From Macrostomum lignano (taxonomy: Eukaryota): a stretch of DNA of 25,956 nucleotides. The notes beneath the pieces were generated by a model. That model saw only the letters and a program-made list of their open reading frames with translations, was not told the DNA's origin and did not search any database. Both the position numbers and the translations under genes were made by a program. Shown here one piece after another: positions 24,362 to 25,660 of the stretch. The stretch covers positions 1 through 25,956 of the forward strand of contig NIVC01002723.1 of the NCBI GenBank assembly GCA_002269645.1, read 5' to 3'. Position 1 is the stretch's first letter, and each line of letters begins with the position of its first letter.

Positions 24362-24810
24362 TGTGTCTGTCTGTCTCTCTGTGTCTGTCTGTCTGTCTGT
24401 CTGTCTGCCTGCTTGTCTGTCTGTCTGCCTGCCTGTCTGTCTGTCTGTCTATCTGTCTGTCTGTCGATCTGTCATAGTGTCTGTCTGTCTGTCTGTCTGT
24501 GACTTTCTGTTTGTCTGTTTGTCTGTCTGTGTGACTGTCTGTCTGTCTGTCTGTCTGTCTGTCTGTCTGTCTGTCTGTCTGTCTGTCTGTCTGTGACTTT
24601 CTGTTTGTCTGTCTGTCTGTGACTTTCTGTTTGTCTGTCTGTGTGACTGTCTGTCTGTCTGTCTGTCTGTGACTTTCTGTTTGTCTGTCTGTGTGACTGT
24701 CTGTCTGTCTGTCTGTCTGTCTGTCTGTGACTTTCTGTTTGTCTGTCTGTGTGACTGTCTGTCTGTCTGCTGTCTGTCTGTCTGTCTGTTTTTCTTTCTG
24801 TCTGTCTGCA
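24362..24810. repeat. (TGTC)n compound microsatellite in the S6K intron upstream of exon 24952-25098
   Basis: About 450 bp of CTGT repeats with TGTGACTTT and TCATAGTG interruptions. Confidence 0.97.
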
Positions 24811-24951
24811 ATCTGTATTTGCTTGCATGTTCATTTAGATCTTATATATCCGGATTCTTGTGACTGTCTGTACAAATTGTACACTCACCTATTCATCACT
24901 TATTGATCGCTTATCTCCCTCCTCCCCCACTCTCGACTCGCCAACTTGCAG

Positions 24952-25098
24952 CTGCTAAAGAAAAGCGTCGTTAAAAGGTTGGGCTACGGTCCCAAAGACC
25001 AGCTGGCCGTGATGGACCACGCGTTTTTCTCGTGCACAGACTGGAACAAGGTGGCCAGCAGGCAGCTGGATGCTCCGTTTAAACCGAATTCGCTGTTG
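24952..25098 (+). CDS. RPS6KB1: S6 kinase exon with subdomain XI and the start of the AGC tail (147 nt, phase 0-0)
   Basis: TTGCAG|CTG gives LLKKSVVKRLGYGPKDQLAVMDHAFFSCTDWNKVASRQLDAPFKPNSLL. Donor TTG|GTAAGT. Confidence 0.92.
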
Positions 25099-25167
25099 GT
25101 AAGTTTATTGGTGTCTTTGGATTGCGATGCCGGTAACTTGTGCAGACTCTTACCTGATCTTTACCTA

Positions 25168-25660
25168 ACAGACAAGCAAGACAGACAGACAGACAGACAG
25201 ACAGGCAGTCAGACAGACAGACAGACACACAGGCAGACAGACCGACAGACAGCCAGACAGACAGACAGACAGACACTATGACAGACAGACGGACAGACAG
25301 ACACTATGACAGACCGACAGACAGACAGACCAACAGACAGACAGCCAGACAGACACACAGACAGACAGACAGACAGACAGACAGACAGACAGACAGGCAG
25401 AAAGACAGACAGACAGACAGACAGACAGACAGACAGACAGACAGACAGACAGACAGACAGACAGACAGAAAGACAGACAGACAGACAGACAGACAGACAG
25501 ACACTAAGACGGGCAGACAGACAGACAAACAGACAGACAGGCAGACAGACACTAAGACGGGCAGACAGACACTAAGACAGACAGACAGACAGACACTAAG
25601 ACAGACAGACAGACAGACAGACACTAAGACAGACAGACACTAAGACGGGCAGACAGACAC
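25168..25660. repeat. (GACA)n compound microsatellite in the S6K intron downstream of exon 24952-25098
   Basis: About 490 bp of GACA repeats with CACTATGA and CACTAAGA interruptions. Confidence 0.97.

Follow-up and report, generated by a model that had tools for sequence, protein, structure and literature searches.

Pairing between distant stretches of intronic RNA can loop out the exon that lies between them and lead to its skipping, and the regulatory pairings known to act in this way are short, specific and conserved. Hairpin RNA loci yield endo-siRNAs in other animals. The repeats (GACA)n and (GATA)n are 'Bkm'-type tetranucleotide simple repeats of animal genomes.

Intronic complementarity can also promote circularisation: inverted pairs of Alu elements drive it at the ZKSCAN1, HIPK3 and EPHB4 exons (Liang and Wilusz, 2014; PMC4201285). 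In human cells, inverted repeats of 30-40 nt are enough to circularise an exon (PMC4201285). In the human test system, circularisation failed with a 51-nt exon and was poor with ZKSCAN1 exons of 400 nt or less, although exons of 336-360 nt worked (PMC4201285). Simple repeats are among the features enriched in the introns that flank circRNAs (PMC6817660; PMC11329666). Our literature search found neither a circRNA study of Macrostomum lignano or other flatworms nor a paper on a circRNA driven by a specific pair of microsatellites.

Here we describe a locus of M. lignano at which two long tetranucleotide arrays, (TGTC)n and (GACA)n, bracket a single exon of an S6 kinase gene in opposite orientation. 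We analysed it in a window of 25,956 nt, which is the whole stretch of DNA under study. A previous sequence-only reading had proposed that the two tracts may share a common origin and could form a long duplex that loops out the exon, as a candidate circRNA or exon-skipping switch. We instead favour, with a probability of roughly 0.62, the reading that the arrays are incidental and independently expanding microsatellites which lie in adjacent introns in opposite orientation and give rise, at most, to a low-level splicing by-product.

The S6 kinase gene, BOX15_Mlig004448g1 (P0001, 511 aa, annotated as a hypothetical protein), codes for a p70 S6 kinase paralog, and the spliced translation of four window exons matches this protein at 100%. 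The best PDB matches of the window exons are kinase-domain chains of human RPS6KB1, with 286 residues aligned and E = 9e-126. Pfam PF00069 and PF00433, the kinase domain and the AGC C-terminal domain, are recorded for the protein, and its full sequence contains the S6K T-loop and the hydrophobic motif FQGFTYVAP. The focal gene thus shares with RPS6KB1 the kinase domain over these 286 residues, the T-loop and the hydrophobic motif, and differs from it in being one of at least six M. lignano S6K paralogs. A protein search with exons A-D returned no near-identical transcript-derived proteins of the focal gene. A second search, with the paralog-specific C-terminal 232 aa, did not return P0001 itself and is uninformative on transcripts.

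The bracketed exon, exon D, encodes subdomain XI (its Arg included) and the start of the AGC C-tail, as seen in the alignment of its peptide LLKKSVVKRLG...PFKPNSLL to LLKRNAASRLG...PFKP of S6K1. As had been claimed, the exon is 147 nt long, has phase 0-0 and is free of stops in frame 0; its borders are cttgcag on the 5' side and TTG/gtaagt, a strong 5' splice site, on the 3' side. The 5' splice site of the preceding exon C, GCG/gttagc, is weaker than consensus. Exon C ends and exon E starts in phase 0, so that skipping of exon D keeps the reading frame. The coordinates of the gene, the arrays and the predicted junctions are collected in Table 1.

Table 1. Coordinates of the features discussed in the text; positions refer to the window unless another locus is named, and a slash marks the junction
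Feature	Position	Strand	Description
Domain DUF4371 of the hAT remnant	6013-6834	+	
hAT dimerisation domain of the hAT remnant	7684-8010	+	
First coding exon	near 15453-15590		
Exon A	20722-21173		
Exon B	21371-21471		
Exon C	24035..24321	+	287 nt; GHVKLTDFG...AQSLLNA; activation loop to subdomain X; end phase 0
Intron C/D	24322..24951	+	630 nt, of which 445 nt are (TGTC)n; pyrimidine-rich tract and 3' splice site in the last 143 nt
Upstream arm (TGTC)n	24364-24808	+	TRF: 445 nt, period 4, 109.5 copies, 80% matches
TGTCATAGTGTC	24470..24481	+	reverse complement of the CTAT variant unit common to the downstream arm
Longest perfect complementarity to the downstream arm	24535..24594	+	60 nt
Exon D	24952..25098	+	147 nt, phase 0-0; translation LLKKSVVKRLGYGPKDQLAVMDHAFFSCTDWNKVASRQLDAPFKPNSLL
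Intron D/E	25099..25956, on to window-equivalent 26017	+	919 nt in total; holds the (GACA)n array
Downstream arm (GACA)n	25179-25659	+	TRF: GACA-based, 481 nt
GACACTATGACA, two copies (25272, 25300)	25272..25311	+	CTAT variant unit common to the upstream arm
Exon E	starts at window-equivalent 26018, outside the window		phase 0
Predicted back-splice junction	25098 joined to 24952		...AACCGAATTCGCTGTTG/CTGCTAAAGAAAAGCGTCG...
Predicted skip junction	24321 joined to window-equivalent 26018		...GAGTCTGCTGAATGCG/ACAAGCGACACGGATGTC...
Actin gene near S6K	L002 7408-8635		
Actin gene near S6K	L003 31057-32553		
Actin gene near S6K	L005 23835-25076		

TGTC is the reverse complement of GACA, and the two arrays are therefore inverted repeats of each other. 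The sequence-only reading had put the tracts at about 450 and 490 nt and their distances from the exon at about 140 and 70 nt, in good agreement with our measurements: TRF reports lengths of 445 and 481 nt, the upstream arm ends 143 nt before exon D, and 80 nt separate the exon from the downstream arm (70 nt with the degenerate first units of that arm included). The arms thereby leave a loop of 370 nt, which contains exon D together with both its splice sites. Parsing of the units reveals both arrays to be imperfect, perfect units making up 65% of the bases of the upstream arm and 89 perfect GACA units making up 74% of the downstream one. Each arm also has private variants. The upstream arm carries a higher-order repeat, tgtgactttctgtttgtc...gtgtgac, in about five copies (in the unit parse of the reverse complement, 'gtcacaca..aacagaaagtcaca' about five times), and in the downstream arm CTAA is present in seven copies and CTAAGACGGGCA in three (also parsed as 'ctaagacgggca', three times). 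These private units lower the complementarity between the arms, which stands at 82.8% with gaps included.

To evaluate the pairing of the arms, we folded positions 24340-25680 and obtained a minimum free energy of -815.5 kcal/mol, with the arms zipped together through 394 inter-arm base pairs. A control in which the downstream arm was reverse-complemented, placing both arrays in direct orientation, reached -233.8 kcal/mol. Folded singly, the two arms gave -33.5 and -11.0 kcal/mol, and the 370-nt middle alone gave -92.5 kcal/mol. In the rest of the window and of the 31.6-kb locus, neither GACA nor TGTC recurs in a run of at least three units, and the upstream intron contains no GACA run and the downstream intron no TGTC run. 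Pairing across the exon would therefore have no competing partner in the pre-mRNA. The earlier proposal that the arms could pair and loop out the exon is thus borne out at the level of predicted structure. The arms exceed the 30-40 nt of reverse complementarity in both flanking introns by which circRNA-prone exons are recognised; given the length of the predicted duplex and the sufficiency of 30-40 nt (PMC4201285), the physical premise for back-splicing or skipping holds.

The locus shares with inverted-Alu circularisation the presence of reverse-complementary sequences in both flanking introns, canonical splice sites, a pairing far above the sufficient 30-40 nt and the lack of an intra-intronic competitor. 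It differs in the nature of the arms, which are tetranucleotide microsatellites and not transposon copies, and which could consequently pair in many registers and also in trans with any GACA- or UGUC-containing transcript. It differs further in that the host is a flatworm, that the circle is here a prediction and that the S6K exon has only 147 nt, which places it above the 51-nt exon that failed in the human system and within the ZKSCAN1 class of 400 nt or less (PMC4201285). As with looped-out exons that are skipped, the S6K stem joins the flanking introns and encloses a symmetric exon whose skipping would be in frame. Of the two splice sites that skipping would join, the upstream 5' site lies 42 nt before its arm and the downstream 3' site 358 nt after the other arm, and the stem would draw them towards each other. 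Unlike the known regulatory pairings, the pairing at this locus consists of a low-complexity repeat and is absent from the closest paralog. As with the Bkm-type repeats, we find long head-to-tail GACA arrays with point variants, and arrays of the GATA family are also present in M. lignano (at locus L003). We claim no association with sex chromosomes or otherwise; the interest lies in the inverted pair around an exon.

The consequences foreseen for the exon could be followed on the sequence itself. In a hypothetical 147-nt circle made of exon D, frame 0 is endless, as had been anticipated, and contains an in-frame ATG at 25012. The motif GTGATGG, previously placed at 25012, in fact starts at 25009, 3 nt earlier, and 25012 is the position of this ATG. 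We also considered the internal GTGATGG (25009) as an alternative donor and found no support for its use. For the predicted in-frame kinase lacking subdomain XI, two elements stand, the preserved frame and the subdomain encoded by exon D; its description as one outcome of a switch is not supported. By the alignment, an S6K product without exon D would lack the arginine and the helix of subdomain XI, and it would probably be misfolded, unstable or inactive.

We then compared the focal gene with its closest paralog, P0002 (77% identity, locus L002). Its equivalent exon, at L002 14000-14146, also has 147 nt and phase 0-0 and lies between introns at the same positions. These introns measure 285 and 105 nt, and neither contains a GACA or TGTC array. 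The inverted arrays are therefore specific to the focal S6K copy, and the pairing elements are not conserved in P0002 despite its identical exon architecture. The intron before the 147-nt exon is common only to the focal gene and this paralog; in three more distant S6K paralogs the exons corresponding to exon D are fused. Within that intron, P0002 has a tandem repeat of another and longer unit (gattcggtgtctagatgctgagattcagtgtctagatgtagc...) at L002 13730-13880, which indicates that the intron was colonised by unrelated repeats in the two paralogs. The best non-Macrostomum matches, P0007 and P0009, were also considered for the intron comparison and proved uninformative, being intronless ORFs on metagenome contigs.

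The arms themselves tell a similar story. Both oriented as GACA, they are 82.8% identical to each other, compared with 85.6% (upstream arm) and 87.0% (downstream arm) to an unlinked 720-nt array at L003 26544-27263, and 89.3% and 89.8%, respectively, to pure (GACA)n. Being closer to the unlinked array and to pure (GACA)n than to each other, the arms owe their complementarity entirely to the shared motif. We accordingly find no co-ordinated or compensatory evolution between them, as their identity to each other remains below that to the unlinked array and their higher-order repeats are private. There is no sign of selection at the locus, and the comparative evidence is against a switch: the arrays are absent from the closest paralog with the identical exon, and the arms do not co-evolve and carry private repeats.

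A common origin of the tracts had been suggested from a shared interruption. Its positions were given correctly: TCATAGTG lies at 24472 and the reverse-complementary CACTATGA at both 25274 and 25302. Neither form occurs elsewhere in the 183 kb M. lignano sample. The unlinked L003 array, an intergenic (TGTC)n tract, contains seven copies of another compound variant, GACGGGCAGACA (as its reverse complement). This two-substitution variant is found three times in the downstream arm as well. Because GACGGGCAGACA is common to different contigs, shared interruptions are not specific evidence of a local common origin. Such an origin is thus not supported, the arms being no closer to each other than to unlinked arrays. 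A transposon origin was rejected, since the non-repeat flanks of both arms and of the L003 array share only chance matches of 9-15 nt; the flanks accordingly have no mobile element in common, and inverted homology is confined to the microsatellite.

We next asked how unusual the arrangement is. The M. lignano sample available for this comparison is small (182.8 kb) and was taken only from S6K paralog loci, six of them covering 177 kb together; tandem repeats account for 27% of the 182.8 kb. In the genome at large, simple and tandem repeats make up 15% (PMC5730564). Two arrays of the same rare motif within 1.3 kb, with none elsewhere in the 31.6-kb locus, represent clustering beyond independent placement. 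Given two arrays, their inverted orientation is a 1-in-2 event. Across the six loci (177 kb), a minimum length of 40 nt and a maximum spacer of 5 kb gave nine clustered inverted pairs, the focal pair being the second largest. Every other inverted pair within the S6K genes is confined to a single intron, so that among the pairs seen only the focal one brackets an S6K exon. The only other pair of same-motif arrays in the sample is of the GATA family: (ATCT)n at L003 32959-33248 (290 nt, 100% pure) and (CTAT)n at 33547-33680 (134 nt). These two arrays (L003 32959-33680) are about 300 nt apart and in direct orientation.

These observations are best accounted for by incidental, independently expanding arrays. 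In this explanation the arrays would have arisen neutrally by replication slippage, in a genome whose load of tandem repeats is exceptional, and their opposite orientation would be happenstance, possibly after an old local inverted copying event. The (UGUC)n:(GACA)n duplex would probably form part of the time in the pre-mRNA, where it would favour back-splicing of exon D, or its skipping with exon C joined to exon E in frame. Any such product would be made at a low level, as a side effect of the arrays and not through a regulated switch, which we infer from the lack of conservation.

The arms could alternatively be related to each other, through an inverted copy made across the exon (by template switching at a stalled fork) or through exchange within a DNA hairpin, with no role for RNA needed. 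The CTAT unit, the only complex variant common to both arms and absent from the rest of the sample, is followed two units on by GATC in one and GACC in the other, and the same motif is clustered within 1.3 kb. Together, the CTAT unit and the clustering hint at a relationship between the arms, and a function may be possible as well. However, the support comes from a single motif, homology between the arms ends with the microsatellite, and GACGGGCAGACA demonstrates that a compound variant can arise or spread without local copying. We consider this alternative unlikely.

On a broader scale, inverted microsatellite pairs might be a general driver of back-splicing and skipping in M. lignano, in the role that SINEs have in mammals, with exon D as an active case that yields either the endless, ATG-containing 147-nt circle or a kinase-dead in-frame isoform. 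We view this joint claim as distinctly improbable. If the duplex does drive back-splicing or skipping, plain microsatellites would supply intronic complementarity as transposons do in mammals, and circular RNAs and exon loss would have, in repeat-rich invertebrate genomes, a source that is cheap and evolves fast. Transgenic M. lignano can be produced (PMC5730564), and the idea of microsatellite-driven circularisation is therefore testable. The locus is a well-formed candidate, of value chiefly as a test case for a genome-wide census.

We hold it very unlikely that the arrays are a functional device in which the duplex loops out the exon and regulates a 147-nt endless-frame circRNA or an in-frame S6K without subdomain XI. 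The structural prerequisites of such a device are all present: the complementary arms are long and have no competitor, the splice sites are canonical, and the exon is symmetric and has an endless frame 0 with an in-frame ATG. With the arms within 370 nt of each other, both would also probably be transcribed before the upstream intron is removed. Against it stand the lack of conservation in the closest paralog with the same exon and the degradation of the arms by private repeats in place of co-evolution. In addition, the exon is short by the measure of the human system, in which 51 nt failed and ZKSCAN1 of 400 nt or less did poorly, and low-complexity repeats have been proposed to pair promiscuously in trans (PMC4201285). 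An exon of 147 nt between arrays of a motif found across the genome is thus a less than ideal substrate. The protein left after skipping, devoid of the subdomain XI Arg and helix, would probably be misfolded.

The hairpin might instead act as double-stranded RNA, its duplex of about 400 bp being a putative Dicer substrate that yields GACA/UGUC small RNAs, or a putative substrate of RNA editing, with effects on the focal gene or on other transcripts with such tracts. The predicted duplex is long, stable and intramolecular and has a perfect core of 60 bp, and GACA-family arrays elsewhere in the genome (L003) are potential targets in trans. The duplex is, however, imperfect (about 83%), and here, as for the splicing model, conservation in the closest paralog is lacking, so that we give this possibility only a slim chance.

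Simple repeats make the M. lignano genome hard to assemble (PMC5730564). We compared the window with a second contig. NIVC01001946.1 (assembly GCA_002269645.1), also from M. lignano, aligns to window positions 5455-25956 with 99.8% identity and 31 small differences, mostly 1-nt indels; this suggests that the window is a differently polished version of the same assembly. Several of the differences are in C runs of 18-23-nt repeats at 10074-10348. That one or both arrays, or their orientation, are a long-read assembly error is barely credible, because from 23589 to the window end at 25956 the two versions are identical and because, whatever the small indels elsewhere and the repeats that hamper assembly, the conserved exon between the arrays is correctly oriented and spliced and the arrays have distinct internal structures, unlike a fold-back chimera.

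The remainder of the window holds other coding sequences and repeats; the window as a whole has no Rfam match at gathering thresholds. On the minus strand, 146-2749 carries the N-terminal exons of a gene for a class I aminoacyl-tRNA synthetase, placed upstream of S6K in head-to-head arrangement, with Pfam tRNA-synt_1 matches at E = 1e-31 and 2e-20. Judged by eye, the HIGH-type motif 'GLHIGHALT' and the match to an editing domain look like those of ValRS. An intron of this synthetase gene contains a 17/68-nt higher-order tandem repeat at 1623-2173. On the plus strand, what remains of a hAT-type (ZMYM1-like) transposase is distributed among at least three frames at 5488-8010. Its best database relatives, from fish, sea cucumber and contigs, are only 47% identical, and no M. 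lignano protein is among the database matches to this hAT-like transposase.

Two satellites accompany the S6K gene. A 23-nt satellite of about 63 copies lies upstream of it at 10430-11874, and most of the intron between exons B and C is taken up by a 16-nt satellite (TATGAAGTGTCGGAGA) of about 143 copies, which extends over 2.3 kb at 21618-23895 and is strongly skewed towards G over C. An actin gene was not found within the 31.6 kb read at the focal locus. Three of the five other paralog loci have one within a few kb of S6K, and the actins of L003 and L005 look identical in protein sequence. On this sequence evidence, the recurrent S6K-actin block points to a segmental duplication.
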